The notes under the pieces were generated by a model. That model saw nothing but the letters and a program-made list of their open reading frames with translations, did not search any database and was not told where the DNA came from. A program made the translations under genes and the position numbers. A DNA stretch of 64,000 nucleotides, taken from positions 58,342,001-58,406,000 of the forward strand of contig OZ249436.1 in the NCBI GenBank assembly GCA_965235115.1. The letters are read 5' to 3'. This DNA comes from Laetmonice hystrix (taxonomy: Eukaryota). Shown piece after piece: positions 46,801 through 53,630 of the stretch (within the stretch, counting starts at the first letter, position 1; each line of letters opens with the position of its first letter).

Positions 46801-47451
46801 TGCCCAACAGATGACCGCTGGTCAGGCTATCCACCCACGTACACACGCTGATTGCAGTTGGTTGGGAGGTAAGTGTAATAATTCCCTCTGAGAGGCAGAG
46901 GTGGGGGACACACATGCAGGGTTGTGGGTGGGTGACAGCTGCAACATGGAACTGCCATGTTCTTCGGCGAGGTCATCAGTTGAATGTGCTGTAGGACGTC
47001 TTGGAAGGGATCAGATATCATGATATCCACAAACTGGCATGTAGCGAAACTAGCGATAAAGCTAAAAAGTCTTGATCCATTGATGTTATACTGTTAACAA
47101 TGACAATGCCTATATTACAACCTAGACAAGGTTGGCTGCCGTTAAAATGACGCCTAAAGTTGCATGAACGGTCTATTCTAGGAATAGTTTCAAGAATGAG
47201 CAATGCCTGATCAGATTACTTCTAGTTCTGATGAACTTCTGGGTTCATATGCAAGCTATAGTTTAATAAAGTAGTGTCTTGAAGGCGACATTCTAGAAGG
47301 CTGCCATTACGTCTTGGCATTACGTCACGGCATGACGAGATGGAGGGACCGGGACCAGACGGTGAGGAACAGACCATCCCAGTAGACAACAGTATAAAAA
47401 TCTGCTGCGTCCATGAAAAAATTACACAGGCGTGTCTGAGCGGGTCTCACG

Positions 47452-47649
47452 GTTTCCCCATGGGCTTGCTCATGGGGGGTCATTACCGCCCCCTCGTGGT
47501 TCAACCTGTAACCACATTTTAGACTATACCCGACAGTCCCTAAATCTCCCAAAGTTCCATGTTCTATTTTTCTTTCCGCCCACTGACCTTCTCACTCCAC
47601 ATTCACCGGTCAAACATCGCACAGAGCACACCTAAAACTAATATCTCAA
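47452..47649 (+). repeat. Split direct repeat A1 (198 bp)
   Basis: GTTTCCCCATGGGCTTGC...AACTAATATCTCAA, identical to 53040-53237. Confidence 0.97.
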
Positions 47650-47659
47650 GAGCAAAGCA

Positions 47660-48847
47660 ATGGCGCCAAAGAAAAAGACGGGAAAAAGACGCCAAAACCA
47701 GTCTATCTCAGAAGACAGCCCTGAACGAGCGCCGACGCCACCACTAGAGGCAGGGCACAAAAATGCAGAGCTTGACGAGCGCGTGAAAAAATTGGAGGGG
47801 CTGTACACAGACGTGGCAGCCATGAAGGCCAGTATCATGGACTTGACCGCCACGCTTCAGCGACCACCGAGGCTCCTCGAGACGACTACCGGGGGCCACA
47901 GCTCGGCTGTATCTACACCAGGCCGCAGACACGAAACACGGGAGCTCTCCGACCAGGCTACATGCGACGCAACTATCACCCTCCGAGGCACCGACACGGG
48001 AACACCGGAGTTTCGGGGCCGTCAACGACAGGCCAGTCAGACCCGGACACGCCACGGGTCAGACGACATTCCACACCCCAGTGACATACGCCGAGACAGG
48101 CACGCGTCCGCATACGTGCGCCAACATCTGCAGGACGACCGGCCCCAATTTTCCGACACAGAGGGTCAAGGTAATCTGTTTGATTCTCGTCCACGTAGAA
48201 ACATTATTAAACCATTCGAATATGTCGAAAGAGATGGACTCCATACACTTAGGCAGAAAGCTGATGTGCGAGATAAGCTCACATATGAGGAATATGTTAA
48301 TGCATTGGTGGCAATGATTAGGGACACTACGGTCACGGAACAGCGCGAAATCCCTAACCTTATTGAACACCTATATCAGGTCACACAGGATGCTATGACC
48401 GCACACTGGCCGAACGTCCTAAGATGGTCTAACACGATCTTTGACAAGATTGATCGGGCTGAACTGACATGGGCTGATAAGGATGACATACACTATGAAC
48501 GCATACGTCTCACAGTGGCTGGACAAGCGCGTCATTTTAACACAAATAAAATTGAAAGTGTAGAAGTCCCATGTCCAGCATTTAACCAAGGCGCATGTCA
48601 GGCGAACGCCGAGTCACATGTTGAGGGTCGAACATTATTCATGCACGTCTGCAGCTTCTGCCACGCGCTATCAGGGCGTCGCTACAACCACATGACATTA
48701 TCGTGTAACAAGCGCGCGACAGCGAGGGGCATGCAACCGGATCAGCGCATGGTGGTCATGGGTCAGCGACAGCAAGGTAACCATCAGCCACCACGTTATT
48801 ATGGTCAACATGGCCAACACCAATGTGACTCAAAAAACTACAGGTGA
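47660..48847 (+). CDS. gag: ORF1, Gag-like nucleic-acid-binding protein (395 aa)
   Basis: ATG 10 bp after A1. N-terminal basic NLS-like PKKKTGKRR and a short coiled-coil-like segment. C-terminal Cys/His cluster CPAFNQGAC...H...HVCSFC...H...C, typical of YR-retrotransposon ORF1. Confidence 0.85.
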   Translation: MAPKKKTGKRRQNQSISEDSPERAPTPPLEAGHKNAELDERVKKLEGLYTDVAAMKASIMDLTATLQRPPRLLETTTGGHSSAVSTPGRRHETRELSDQATCDATITLRGTDTGTPEFRGRQRQASQTRTRHGSDDIPHPSDIRRDRHASAYVRQHLQDDRPQFSDTEGQGNLFDSRPRRNIIKPFEYVERDGLHTLRQKADVRDKLTYEEYVNALVAMIRDTTVTEQREIPNLIEHLYQVTQDAMTAHWPNVLRWSNTIFDKIDRAELTWADKDDIHYERIRLTVAGQARHFNTNKIESVEVPCPAFNQGACQANAESHVEGRTLFMHVCSFCHALSGRRYNHMTLSCNKRATARGMQPDQRMVVMGQRQQGNHQPPRYYGQHGQHQCDSKNYR

Positions 48848-48864
48848 GCGTCCTCTCTGGGCGC
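48832..48864 (+). promoter_or_regulatory. Candidate -1 ribosomal frameshift signal
   Basis: A_AAA_AAC (48832-48838) is correctly phased in gag. After a 9-nt spacer comes the stem GCGTCC/GGGCGC (48848-53 / 48859-64). The -1 frame is the open pol frame. Confidence 0.6.
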
Positions 48865-50690
48865 CGACATGAAGGGTGTAGAAGCACTCAGCAACCACTG
48901 CCTGCACCACCTAATGTTATGTCACTATGCCTTACTAGGCCTGCAACAACGTGTCGGCTGACTAAGGGCAACACTCAGCAACTACGGCATACACCCGCTA
49001 ATGCTATGTCACTCTGCGTCACCAGGCATGCACCATCGTGTAGGCTGACCGAGGGCAACACTCAGCAACCACTGCCTACACCCGTCAATGCTATGTCACT
49101 CTGCGTCACCAGGCCTGTACCATCGTGTAGGCTGACCGAGGCCAACACTCAGCAACCACTGCCTACACCCGTCAATGCTATGTCACTCTGCGTCACCAGG
49201 CCTGCACCAACGTGTAGGCTGACCGAGGGCAACACTCAGCAACCACTGCCTACACCCGTCAATGCTATGTCACTCTGCGTCACCAGGCCTGCACCAACGT
49301 GTAGGCTGACCGAGGGCAACACTCAGCAACCACTGCCTACACCCGTCAATGCTATGTCACTCTGCGTCACCAGGCCTGCACCAACGTGTAGGCTGACCGA
49401 GGGCAACACTCAGCAACCACTGCCTACACCCGTCAATGCTATGTCACTCTGCGTCACCAGGCCTGCACCAACGTGTAGGCTGACCGAGGGCAACACTCAG
49501 CAACCACTGCCTACACCCGTCAATGCTATGTCACTCTGCGTCACCAGGCCTGCACCAACGTGTAGGCTGACCGAGGGCAACACCCAGCAATCACCGCCCA
49601 CACCTACCAACATTATACCATTACGCGTCACCAGGCCAGACAATAAAAATGCATTGTGTGCTGCACGCCCCAATCGAGGCAATGAAGCACCACCCCTTAA
49701 ACACACACCAGACTTTCAGGAGATTAGGAGAAGATGTGAATTGAACCTCCCACTAAACATGGGAGACGTCTATGGAGACGCTATCCCCGAATATAGGCGA
49801 AAGTTTTGGCCGAACGCCGATCGTAAGGTTCTCGGCAGTGAATTATACAACATTTATCAGAAAGTTAAAGCGTCAGGGTTACATAATTGCATCGGACAAA
49901 AAATGGTGGTCCCCTCGCAGCTAAACATCCCAGCATGGGAAAAATACCTCTCTAAAGATGGGGAGGACACTGAACTACTTGGTTTTATTAAATACGGCTT
50001 CCCATTAGGATACATTGGCCCAGTATCAGACACAACTGAAACTCCCAACCATGATAGTGCAGAACAATTCCCCGAGCAGGTTCATAAGTTCATTGACTCA
50101 GAACTCAATAGGGGCGCCGTCCTGGGTCCATTCACAGCCCCACCGTTTGTTGAGTGGTGCCATGTGTCACCACTCATGACTCGCCCCAAGTCGGATTTCA
50201 TAAACAGGAGAGTGATAATGGATATGTCATACCCAACTGACAAATCAGTTAATGCGTTTATTGCTAAGAACACTGTCTTAGGCACGCTCAGGGAACACAC
50301 CCTTCCTACTGTCGATAGTGTATTACGAGAGATAAATAGGATAGGACCAGGCGCAGTACTTTTTACCGTAGATATAGCTCGCGCATATAAAAACTTTCGC
50401 AGCTGCCCATTAGATTGGCCGCTGCTCACATTCAAGTGGAAACGCAATACATATCTAGACATAGCAATGCCATTTGGAGCCCGTGTGTCATCTGCACACA
50501 TGGGCCGTGTGGCAGGTGTGATAACGTCGGTACTAAGGAGTAGGGGCGTCTCTTCGTATATGTACCTGGATGACCTGATAGGCATTGCACCGAACATGAA
50601 GGAGGCCAGCCGGGGATTTACGGTGACCCGGGATCTGTTCGTTGAACTTGGCCTGCCAGAGGCATTTGACAAGACTCAGCCCCCAGCAAC

Positions 50691-50693
<3 letters not shown>
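48844..50693 (+). CDS. pol: ORF2 5' part: repeat linker plus reverse transcriptase, interrupted at 50693
   Basis: DIRS-type RT motifs SPLMTRPK, RVIMDMS, VDIARAYK, AMPFGARVSS and catalytic YLDD. The frame runs into the poly-T of a nested insertion; removing 50694-51033 rejoins it in frame as ...KTQPPAT-M-VKWLGI... (882 aa counted from 48844). Confidence 0.92.
48886..49637 (+). repeat. 87-bp in-frame coding tandem repeat (29 aa, 8 full copies plus 1 partial)
   Basis: Unit starts every 87 bp from 48886 to 49582 and encodes TQQPLPTPVNAMSLCVTRPAPTCRLTEGN. Copies 4-8 are identical; the outer copies are diverged. Confidence 0.97.
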
Positions 50694-50725
<32 letters not shown>

Positions 50726-51033
50726 TATGCATATTTTGACAGGGGAACCCACTCGACTTGTCAGCCGCCATTAATGTAGGGCCCTGTGATACATTAACGT
50801 ATTATACACTTTCACACATACATTCTACATTACCTTGTATGTACAGTATATAGTTTTACACATCCTTCTTAGCACTTAACAATTACATATAATATTTCTG
50901 CACTTACACATTCACTTTCGTATACAATTTAACCCATGCTTCTTAGAGCTTCTTACGAGATAAATCTATCTTGTTCCCCCTAGTGTCTTTCATTCATGTA
51001 CATATTATTATAATATTTTTTAATCTCTACTAT
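50694..51033 (-). mobile_element. Nested 5'-truncated non-LTR retroposon (LINE/SINE 3' end, L2/CR1-group-like tail)
   Basis: About 31-nt poly-T (50693-50723) is an antisense poly(A) preceded by AATAAA. TSD ACTAT at 50689-93 and 51029-33. A stem-loop (50739-50787, CAGGGCCC...CGGCTGACAAGTCG...GGGTTCCCCTG on the minus strand) lies just upstream of the tail. Confidence 0.85.
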
Positions 51034-51832
51034 GGTTAAGTGGCTCGGCATAGATATTGATACTCAAAACATGCTGGTCAGTATTCCAAAAAAGAAAATC
51101 GAAGAAACTCTCACAGAGGTGGAAAAGGTACGAGAAAAACGTTCTATTACCAAAAAAGGGATGCAGAGGCTCCTGGGTCGTATACTGCACATCTCCAAAT
51201 GTGTCACACCAGCACGTCTGTTTGTGGGTAGGCTGCTTCAGGCCTTCCGGGACGCGAAAGGTGGATATATTTGCCTCACTCGAGAGGACAAACGTGACCT
51301 TGACTGGTTCGTTAACTTTCTGCCTAAGTGGAACGGGAAGTCAATAATAAACAATGACTGTATCAGTAAGGAGATTGTAGCAGACGCGTGTAAATCAGGT
51401 ATAGGGGCCTCGGATGGGAACAGGTTCTACTCGGTAACGATCCCCACCTTTATGAAAGACATGCATATTTCAGACATTGAGGCAGTGAATGTACTTATAG
51501 CCCTCAGGACGTTTCTATCACAAGAGCAGATGGGCACGACTGTGATGGTTCGTTCCGACAACGCTGCTGCCGTCACTGTGTACTCCACGGGTAGGGGACG
51601 AGACCCACTTCTCCTCACATGTGCCCGGGCAGTATTCCTTTTGCAAGCACAACTGCAGGTTAAGATTATATTTCGACACACACCGGGCACCCACATGAAG
51701 CTAGCTGATGCATTAAGTCGCGCCCCGAACGACCGTCGCTGCAAGGCCGTAGCGGACGAGCTTGTCAGAAGCTACAACCTCATTGAGTGTTTCCCCGATA
51801 TAACTGACACGTGCATTAATCCGGGGATTTGA
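51032..51832 (+). CDS. pol: ORF2 3' part: RT C-terminus and RNase H
   Basis: VKWLGIDID, LLGRILH, and RNase H catalytic motifs VADAC, DIEAV, RSDN and H...LADALSR. Continues the upstream RT once the insertion is removed. Confidence 0.92.
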   Translation: MVKWLGIDIDTQNMLVSIPKKKIEETLTEVEKVREKRSITKKGMQRLLGRILHISKCVTPARLFVGRLLQAFRDAKGGYICLTREDKRDLDWFVNFLPKWNGKSIINNDCISKEIVADACKSGIGASDGNRFYSVTIPTFMKDMHISDIEAVNVLIALRTFLSQEQMGTTVMVRSDNAAAVTVYSTGRGRDPLLLTCARAVFLLQAQLQVKIIFRHTPGTHMKLADALSRAPNDRRCKAVADELVRSYNLIECFPDITDTCINPGI

Positions 51833-51861
51833 TAAGTCTTGTCCCTTTTGTTGTTGTACAG
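51829..51861 (+). promoter_or_regulatory. Candidate 3' splice site for the YR exon
   Basis: TTGAT branch-point-like motif (A at 51832), pyrimidine tract TCTTGTCCCTTTTGTTGTTGT, then ACAG| at 51858-51861. Confidence 0.6.
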
Positions 51862-52829
51862 ATCCAGCGAGGGACAGGCTCATTAGGCAAGCTGTACAAA
51901 CTCAAGGGGCCGCCAGGGCACCGGGAACAGCTGCAAACTACAGGACTGCAGTCAGTGCGTATTTGGCGTTCTGTCACAGGTTCCAGGTTCATCACAAAGC
52001 CCCAGCAGTCCAGGACGCATGCATGTGTATTGAATATTTCTCGACCTTCCTTAAGTCACCAGCATCGATAGAAAATTATGTCTCCGCTATCCGACAGTAT
52101 CTTAGGAGGATGGTAGTCCAAAATAGTGCATTCGAATCCTATCGCGTCCAGTTGGCAATAGATGCACATAAACGACGGAAGGACCATACGCCACTACAAA
52201 AGCCACCGCTAGATACAGCATTGCTTAGGGCAGTCATGTTGGCAACAGTGTCACGCTACTTAGGGAACTCCGTCCGATTCGCATTCCTACTCTTATACTA
52301 CGCAGGCGCACGTCAATCGGAGGTGGTGCCCCCATCACAGTCCAGATTTGATCCAGACAGACACCTCACAAGGAAGGATGTGTATATTAAGGATGAAATG
52401 TTAATTATATCGCAGAAATGGGCAAAGAACCAGCAGCTCTATAATCAAAGTAGGGTAATCGCACTCCCACCCGGGCCAGACCCCATGTTGTGCCCAGTGA
52501 CTATGTATCGCCAGGTCATCAGAGATACCCCCACTAAGTCGCCGGTACAGCCTCTGTTGGCTCACACTGCGGATTATTCACCAGTCACAGCTAGGTGGCT
52601 GACGGCGGAATTGCGAACCATCATCCAGAGGTTGGGGGGACCCCATCAGACGGTCTCACTCCATAGCATCCGGAGATCCGCAGCCACTGACGCGTTCGCG
52701 GGCGGCTTCTCCCAGCTCCAGGTCCAGAACTTCGGTGCCTGGTCCTCTAATGCGTATAAGAAATATATAAGGCTAATGGATGCAAATGCGGTTTCAAAAT
52801 ACCTGGTTCAAAGATTGACGAGCTCTTGA
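51862..52829 (+). CDS. Tyrosine recombinase (YR)
   Basis: Catalytic set R (YYAGARQSEV), K (QKWAKN), H-x-x-R (LHSIRR), W (GAWSS) and Y (AYKKY). The frame is open from 51804. The ORF-track start at 51963 is TTG, not ATG, and the upstream APGTAANYRTAVSAYLAFC resembles the YR N-terminal helix. Confidence 0.92.
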
Positions 52830-52887
52830 GTAAATGTAATCGTACTTATTATTCAATAACCCTCACTTCATTTTAGTTTGGGGCTTG

Positions 52888-53039
52888 GCCATTTTATCAT
52901 AAGTCATATTTTAACCCATTATTTACCTCATCTCCTAAGTCGATTTTATTATTGTATCATGTTTTTAATATCCGGTGAAATAAATGTGCTATTCCCCAAC
53001 ACTTGTCTTATGTTGAGCCCGAGGGGATGTAGGGTAATG
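52888..53039 (+). repeat. Split direct repeat B1 (152 bp)
   Basis: GCCATTTTATCATAAG...GTAGGGTAATG, identical to 53311-53462. Contains AATAAA (52979-52984). Confidence 0.97.
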
Positions 53040-53237
53040 GTTTCCCCATGGGCTTGCTCATGGGGGGTCATTACCGCCCCCTCGTGGTTCAACCTGTAAC
53101 CACATTTTAGACTATACCCGACAGTCCCTAAATCTCCCAAAGTTCCATGTTCTATTTTTCTTTCCGCCCACTGACCTTCTCACTCCACATTCACCGGTCA
53201 AACATCGCACAGAGCACACCTAAAACTAATATCTCAA
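53040..53237 (+). repeat. Split direct repeat A2 (198 bp)
   Basis: Identical to A1 and directly abuts B1. Confidence 0.97.
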
Positions 53238-53310
53238 CCCACCCACCCGCTCCAATCTATAAAACTAGCTGTAAAGATACAATGTACCATTATTTCACCA
53301 CAGTAAAATT

Positions 53311-53462
53311 GCCATTTTATCATAAGTCATATTTTAACCCATTATTTACCTCATCTCCTAAGTCGATTTTATTATTGTATCATGTTTTTAATATCCGGTG
53401 AAATAAATGTGCTATTCCCCAACACTTGTCTTATGTTGAGCCCGAGGGGATGTAGGGTAATG
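53311..53462 (+). repeat. Split direct repeat B2 (152 bp), right end of the element
   Basis: Identical to B1. AATAAA at 53402-53407 is a candidate polyadenylation signal. Confidence 0.97.
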
Positions 53463-53630
53463 AGCTCCTCATGTCTACTCTTGGGTCTTTCCTGGGCCTG
53501 TCCTGAAGTGCTGGGCTGGCTCCTGCCACGCCCACCAGGTGCAGCCTGAGCTCCTCGCCTCTACTCCTGGGTCTTTCCTGGGCCTATCCTGGACTGAGCT
53601 CGCTCCTGCCACGCCCACCAGGTGCAGCCT
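53462..53630. repeat. Imperfect ~85-bp tandem duplication in the right flank
   Basis: GAGCTCCTC...TCTACTC.TGGGTCTTTCCTGGGCCT.TCCTG...GCTCCTGCCACGCCCACCAGGTGCAGCCT at 53462 and 53548. Confidence 0.85.

Follow-up and report, generated by a model that had tools for sequence, protein, structure and literature searches.

A conserved splice acceptor and an intron-less retrocopy suggest that an Ngaro retrotransposon of Laetmonice hystrix joins its recombinase to Gag by splicing

Introduction

Retroviral and gypsy-type env genes are expressed from a singly spliced subgenomic mRNA. How the DIRS and Ngaro retrotransposons express their tyrosine recombinase (YR) is poorly understood; the YR open reading frame (ORF) often has no start codon and has been called overlapping or frameshifted. 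Ngaro elements, as Goodwin and Poulter reportedly set out in 2004, are tyrosine-recombinase retrotransposons of the DIRS order, and the absence of a methyltransferase separates them from DIRS1 and PAT. Here, we describe a young Ngaro-type element located at positions 47451-53473 of a 64,000-nt stretch of the Laetmonice hystrix genome (the window; all positions given below are window positions on the + strand unless a contig is named), whose start-codon-less YR exon is probably spliced to an N-terminal piece of Gag.

Like the Ngaro elements described so far, the window element encodes no methyltransferase, has gag, reverse transcriptase (RT)/RNase H and YR in this order and repeats of the arrangement A1...B1-A2-B2, with a YR ORF overlapping pol or lying in another frame. 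A survey of fungal elements described the Ngaro YR ORF as 'in frame or frameshifted' (PMC3783388). For DIRS-1, an intron-marker assay demonstrated that spliced element RNA is reverse-transcribed, giving an integrated copy without the intron (PMC7192593). The literature we searched, which excludes the founding Ngaro paper, holds no description of a native Ngaro intron or of a Gag-YR spliced product, and a prior mention is possible. Ngaro elements as such are already known; judging from this literature, it is the proposed splicing-based expression of YR that would be new.

Results

The YR exon (51862-52829) encodes an N-terminal SAM-like and a catalytic domain in 322 codons, counting a split Asp codon, plus the stop. 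Its Pfam matches to Phage_integrase and SAM-like are weak; a HMMER search with the exon returned 1011 relatives at E ≤ 1e-10. Among 11 sequences, H287, R290 and Y321 are invariant and R170 (the Arg of ARQSE) is nearly so, which gives the Arg, His-x-x-Arg and Tyr of the tyrosine recombinase that marks Ngaro elements. Open from 51804, the YR frame overlaps the end of pol by 29 nt (51804-51832). The first in-frame ATG is found only at 52023, amino acid (aa) 73 of the open frame, and lies past the conserved N-terminal segment as judged from an alignment with relatives. The absence of a start codon ahead of this segment, noted in the initial annotation of the window, also holds for those sister copies in which the intron described below is present, none of which has a YR ATG ahead of the conserved N-terminal domain.

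The YR exon is directly preceded by a candidate 3′ splice region (51829-51861), which consists of a branch-like TTGAT (51829-51833), a pyrimidine-rich tract and ACAG, with the cut after 51861. The branch-like A (51832) is at the same time the A of the pol stop codon TGA (51830-51832) and lies 29 nt upstream of the AG. As the split codon GAT spans 51861-51863, the acceptor is of phase 1, and G+AT restores Asp. These features had been proposed from the window alone, and each of them was confirmed to the base. In a crude splice score of our own, the acceptor ties for the top rank among the 326 AG sites of the element.

We then found a copy of the element from which an intron ending at this acceptor is missing. 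Searching the Laetmonice hystrix assembly (627 Mb, 35 contigs), we obtained a single locus that matches continuously across a 51590/51862 junction, namely a copy on contig C21 (L031, G000:C21:18661300-18668300, minus strand) that lacks exactly positions 51591-51861. Where the window reads CACGG/GTAGGG ... TTGTTGTACAG/ATCC, the C21 copy reads CACGG/ATCC. The missing segment is a 271-nt GT..AG intron (CGG/GTAGGG ... TACAG/AT) that contains the pol stop codon and the C-terminal third of RNase H including the ADALSR motif. Both of its ends are of phase 1, so that the C21 copy carries a single 1129-aa pol-YR open frame. An ordinary deletion is very unlikely, because both ends of the gap coincide with the GT and AG landmarks, and the simplest reading is that the C21 copy arose by retrocopying from spliced RNA. 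This intron-less copy shows that the acceptor 51861/51862 was used in vivo at least once, which places a functional 3′ splice site directly upstream of the downstream gene, as an env-like strategy calls for. Two further loci, C1:57810048 and C19:23845169, were considered as spliced copies and rejected, as their continuous match was not reproduced with a junction-centred query.

The initial annotation had called for a comparison of the acceptor and its phase in related Ngaro families, and both proved to be conserved. Seven other Ngaro families of the Laetmonice hystrix genome, whose YR is 26-52% identical, all have a phase-1 acceptor at the counterpart of codon 51861-51863. These acceptors appear as a pyrimidine-rich run ending in (C/T)AG, while the remaining upstream sequence is unrelated among families, and the YR frame usually contains stops shortly upstream of them. 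A homologous phase-1 acceptor is also present in seven foreign elements, i.e., L067, L068, L070, L072, the amphioxus elements L074 and L076, and L077 from Ptychodera. In some families pol and YR share a frame and in others they are shifted, while acceptor and phase stay constant. This argues against a frameshift or readthrough mechanism shared by the group.

For the upstream partner of this acceptor, two donor-like sites within gag had been put forward. Donor 1 (AAG/GTAATC, 48168-48176, cut after 48170) lies 511 nt into gag and hence in phase 1, within the Gly codon GGT of a Q-G-N context. The coding part of the proposed exon 1 would accordingly span 47660-48170 and comprise the N-terminal module of Gag, i.e., 170 aa and the first base of the Gly codon. 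Counterparts of donor 1, reading xAG/GTAA(T/G) in phase 1 of a Gly GGT codon, occur in all six foreign elements with a readable gag (L069, L070, L072, L074, L076 and L077) and lie 12-35 aa upstream of the conserved gag core. In four of the five foreign elements aligned (L069, L070, L072 and L074), the site falls into the same MAFFT column as donor 1, 12-25 aa before the core; the donor of L076 is 19 columns off, in a poorly aligned stretch. The sequences read CAAG/GTAATC in the window (aa 170), AAAG/GTAATA in L069, CAAG/GTAATG in L070 and GAGG/GTAAGA in L072. The donor Gly is encoded by GGT in 7/7 elements, compared to 23% of the Gly codons in these gags, and phase-1 GGT-AAN sites are few, with just one or two per gag. 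Donor 1 as initially annotated is thus borne out at the homologous gag site, and the upstream gene offers the conserved 5′ donor of compatible phase that an env-like strategy needs.

The second donor-like site (AAG/GTAACC, 48774-48782, cut after 48776) lies 1117 nt into gag. Its sequence, its phase 1 and its Q-G-N context are as annotated, and the lengths calculated for the two fusions are also correct, with 170+322 = 492 aa from donor 1 and 372+322 = 694 aa from donor 2, as are all coordinates and phases. A search for a counterpart of donor 2 in the gags of the relatives found none, and the 694-aa product is left without comparative support. Conservation across families is, at the level of sequence, the decisive argument for preferring the acceptor and donor 1 over chance, and it does not extend to donor 2. 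Scoring of the splice sites, also suggested initially, gave the acceptor the tied top rank stated above and placed the two gag sites at ranks 4-5 among 222 GT sites. The best-scoring donor, CAG/GTGAGC at 48843/48844, was rejected, as neither the gag nor the pol frame puts it in phase with YR and it is not conserved in relatives. This site (48840-48849) overlaps the gag stop codon, and the message formed by joining it to the YR acceptor would encode Gag alone, ending in a short altered tail.

Gene models from amphioxus and acorn worm connect the two conserved sites. The relatives of the YR exon found by HMMER are of two kinds, one with Pol and YR in one ORF (P0017, P0035, P0099 and P0154) and one with an N-terminal extension of 75-220 aa that is not derived from pol. 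Among the latter, P0078 has 503 aa and is made up of residues 1-173 and 1037-1366 of P0077, which models the same element with 1366 aa. NCBI models that join donor 1 to the acceptor, with RT/RNase H inside the intron, are XP_078682739.1 and three further loci as well as XP_078660129.1 from Branchiostoma, XP_019639177.1 from B. belcheri (the source also of XP_019634597.1), and XP_070571117.1 and XP_070571119.1 from Ptychodera flava. In the mapped models, exon 1 is equivalent to that proposed for the window and ends in phase 1 of a Gly GGT codon, at AAAG/GTAAGC in L074 (aa 173), at AAAG/GTAAGG in L076 (aa 144), and at GGAG/GTAAGC (aa 171) and GAAG/GTAATC (aa 72) in L077; exon 2 begins at the conserved acceptor. 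Four more models of this type, joining an N-terminal Gag module to YR (GagN-YR; 549-600 aa; B. floridae, B. lanceolatum and hybrid assemblies), were listed without mapping. The GagN-YR RefSeq proteins of Branchiostoma and Ptychodera comprise 482-600 aa, and 492 aa are predicted for the window. P0077 corresponds to the GenBank entry KAI8490524.1 (L074:3001-7609), an amphioxus Ngaro that carries the name 'cytoplasmic pattern recognition receptor signaling pathway in response to virus'. This name is an evident annotation transfer error, the protein being a gag-RT-YR polyprotein model.

Two relatives from other assemblies, L069 and L075:1-2594, have kept gag and YR and lack RT. L069 (L069:6340-8810), which has gag and YR and no pol, was tried as a Gag-YR retrocopy and dismissed as a deletion derivative, since its breakpoints fall into the start of pol and ~50 aa into YR. 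L075 retains 19 aa of RNase H, which run into YR at the very Gly used in the C21 splice; this join is consistent with splicing and was not counted, for want of an intron-bearing parent.

The initial annotation also proposed that Gag-Pol arises by frameshifting, and the end of gag has the expected sequence. The heptamer A_AAA_AAC (48832-48838, in the gag frame) conforms to the X_XXY_YYZ pattern of -1 programmed frameshifting, and the pol frame (-1) opens just 16 nt upstream of the gag stop, which is the full extent of the gag/pol overlap. The same A_AAA_AAC is found at the end of gag in two relatives (L069 and L070). The fold predicted for 48829-48930 is unremarkable (-28 kcal/mol, z = -1.1).

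The assignment of the element to Ngaro follows from its overall architecture. The terminal repeat A1 (47451-47649, 199 nt) is 100% identical to A2 (53039-53237), and the repeat block at the other end (52888-53473) comprises B1 (52888-53050), which abuts A2, then A2 and B2 (53311-53473); B1 and B2 are 98% identical over 163 nt. The repeats are hence split direct repeats in the order A1...B1-A2-B2. The gag ORF (47660-48847) encodes 395 aa with a basic N-terminus resembling a nuclear localization signal (NLS; PKKKTGKRR), followed by a core with a Cys/His motif, and homologous gags exist in L069, L070 and L072. The pol gene (48829-51832) is homologous to the pol of relatives at 30-48% identity. 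Its sole Pfam match is RVT_1 (E 1.9e-6, slightly below the gathering score), the RNase H motifs SDN and ADALSR are present in the translation of 51032-51829, and pol stops directly past RNase H without a methyltransferase domain. Within pol, an ATG in the pol frame (MGTTVMVRSDN...; 51533-51590), preceded by an acceptor-like CAG, lies 58 nt ahead of the RNase H donor; in RNA spliced at the 271-nt intron it would be an in-frame YR start with a 20-aa leader.

About eight copies of the element, 98-100% identical, reside in the Laetmonice hystrix genome. Intact sister copies have a pol of 829-916 aa, in which the differences are multiples of 29 aa, i.e., of the 87-bp unit of a tandem array in the N-terminal part of pol (48798-49706) that varies in unit number; the lengths are 829, 858 or 916 aa depending on this number. 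A repetitive stretch is present at the equivalent place in the foreign relative P0126/L075. The C21 copy shares 99.7% identity and the number of 87-bp units with the window copy, and has no B2 after A2. In a copy on contig C19 (L035, G000:C19:18475800-18485799, minus strand), the matches to window positions 52779 and 52774 are ~5.3 kb apart, which points to a large insertion close to where YR ends.

The window copy itself is interrupted by an insert of ~335 bp at ~50694-51028 that resembles a short interspersed nuclear element (SINE), has a long poly-T at its left end and is not mentioned in the initial annotation. None of the sister copies carries it, many other genome sites do, and contigs from sequencing runs skip it, joining 50679 to 51029. 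Because the unit is 98-100% identical at these other sites, its insertion into pol must be very recent. With its pol broken by the insert, the window copy is unable to make its own RT.

Discussion

The core idea of the initial annotation, an ATG-less YR exon spliced to an N-terminal piece of Gag, is supported by the conserved acceptor and donor 1, the intron loss in the C21 copy and the NCBI models that join both sites. In the mechanism we propose, the unspliced full-length transcript would give Gag, and a -1 frameshift at A_AAA_AAC would give Gag-Pol with RT/RNase H. A fraction of the transcript would be spliced from the phase-1 donor in the gag Gly codon (48170/48171) to the phase-1 acceptor at the first YR codon (51861/51862), and the subgenomic mRNA so formed would encode a 492-aa protein in which the Gag N-terminal module (to aa 170) precedes the complete YR, itself devoid of a start codon. 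In the window family, the acceptor can also pair with the family-specific RNase H Gly donor (51590/51591), which brings YR into the pol frame, and one such RNA spliced at 51590/51862 was presumably reverse-transcribed and inserted on contig C21. The shared N-terminal module, which starts with a basic NLS-like stretch in the window and in most relatives read, might serve nuclear import or join YR to Gag assemblies. We regard the full model, with Gag, frameshifted Gag-Pol and spliced GagN-YR made from one transcript, as probable; the junction 48170/51862 in Laetmonice hystrix is inferred from sequence comparison. With somewhat less assurance, we also lean towards the view that alternative splicing to GagN-YR is an ancient and conserved expression strategy of deuterostome Ngaro elements, in which the module carries YR into the nucleus or into Gag assemblies, and leaky donors such as that in RNase H seed derivative families of the same genome that lack RT or carry RNase H-YR fusions.

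Several points weigh against this model. The one junction recorded in the Laetmonice hystrix genome uses the RNase H donor 51590/51591, which the initial annotation had overlooked, and no genomic copy with a 48170/51862 junction occurred among the matches scored, no dedicated genome-wide look having been made. Donor 1 is middling in our crude score, lacking a G at +5, and donors of equal or greater strength lie between it and the acceptor. Its comparison covers the window and six foreign gags, and the NCBI models may be partly ab initio. Unitigs from sequencing runs of one DNA-like sample show the unspliced, SINE-less form and no joints, an absence that is uninformative in such a sample. Some relatives also carry a short in-frame ATG directly ahead of the acceptor position (P0003-P0005) or encode Pol-YR as a continuous ORF (P0017, P0035, P0099 and P0154), so that splicing is not the sole route to YR in the group. 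The initial annotation had held that an in-frame ATG in siblings would speak against splicing; none is found in the intron-bearing sisters and some relatives do have one, and we judge this condition to be over-strict.

How else could YR be expressed? The short 271-nt intron might be the sole functional route, YR then being the C-terminus of a Gag-Pol with RT and a truncated RNase H, and the donor-like sites in gag being irrelevant. Its junction is the only one documented in the genome and joins phase 1 to phase 1 in frame; moreover, many relatives have Pol-YR as one ORF, fungal Ngaro elements may have YR in the frame of RT-RNase H (PMC3783388), and in L075 the RNase H sequence 'NSG' is joined to YR at the same Gly. 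We nevertheless consider this explanation unlikely. The homologous RNase H Gly codon contains no GT (it is GGA, GGG or GGC) in the seven other in-genome families and in L068, L074 and L076, all of which have kept the acceptor. Furthermore, the splice deletes the C-terminal third of RNase H with ADALSR, and it leaves the conserved gag donor and the RefSeq GagN-YR models unexplained.

A reading without any splicing, in which YR is translated from unspliced RNA by a +1 frameshift or reinitiation in the 29-nt pol/YR overlap, from a non-AUG start or from the internal ATG 52023, would fit the overlap at 51804-51832, the description of YR ORFs as frameshifted or overlapping (PMC3783388) and the ATGs that precede the acceptor position by a few codons in P0003-P0005. 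It appears quite unlikely to us, given that the pol/YR frame relation differs among families with constant acceptor and phase, that no slippery motif was noted in the overlap, that a start at 52023 would lose ~54 conserved residues and that it does not account for the precise loss of a GT..AG interval from the C21 copy. It is highly improbable, finally, that the splice-like motifs are chance or coding by-products, the C21 gap a simple deletion from the genome and the gene models ab initio artefacts. Chance alone would indeed give each gag one or two phase-1 GGT-AAN sites, but the C21 deletion ends exactly at GT and AG, the acceptor is conserved across at least 14 diverged elements, in which the sequence upstream of it is unrelated among families save for its pyrimidine richness and (C/T)AG end, and the donor Gly is GGT in every element compared, far above the background of Gly codon usage.

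If the splicing model is true, the donor/acceptor pair and the intron-less retrocopy provide a concrete and testable mechanism for YR expression, and many 'uncharacterized protein' models in amphioxus and acorn worm would be explained. A non-LTR-type class of retroelements, thought to rely on overlapping ORFs, would have reached a retrovirus-like subgenomic mRNA, and the 492-aa product would be missed by ORF-based transposon annotation pipelines.

A close parallel to the proposed model is the env mRNA of retroviruses and gypsy-type elements, where a single promoter is likewise combined with a 5′ donor located in gag or close to it and an acceptor immediately ahead of the 3′ gene. As in retroviruses, the unspliced RNA would double as genome and gag-pol mRNA. 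Unlike env, the downstream gene of the window element is the integration enzyme, and 170 Gag codons, not a leader alone, would form its N-terminus. In the single-ORF RT-RNase H-YR relatives, YR is part of the Pol polyprotein, a layout that the C21 copy recreates; the window family differs from them by a stop codon and a frame change between pol and YR, so that the fusion needs splicing and costs the C-terminus of RNase H. The C21 copy, in turn, resembles a natural case of the marker intron loss observed with DIRS-1 (PMC7192593). The intron in that assay was artificial and antisense to the element, whereas the intron of the window element is native, in sense orientation and located within pol/YR.

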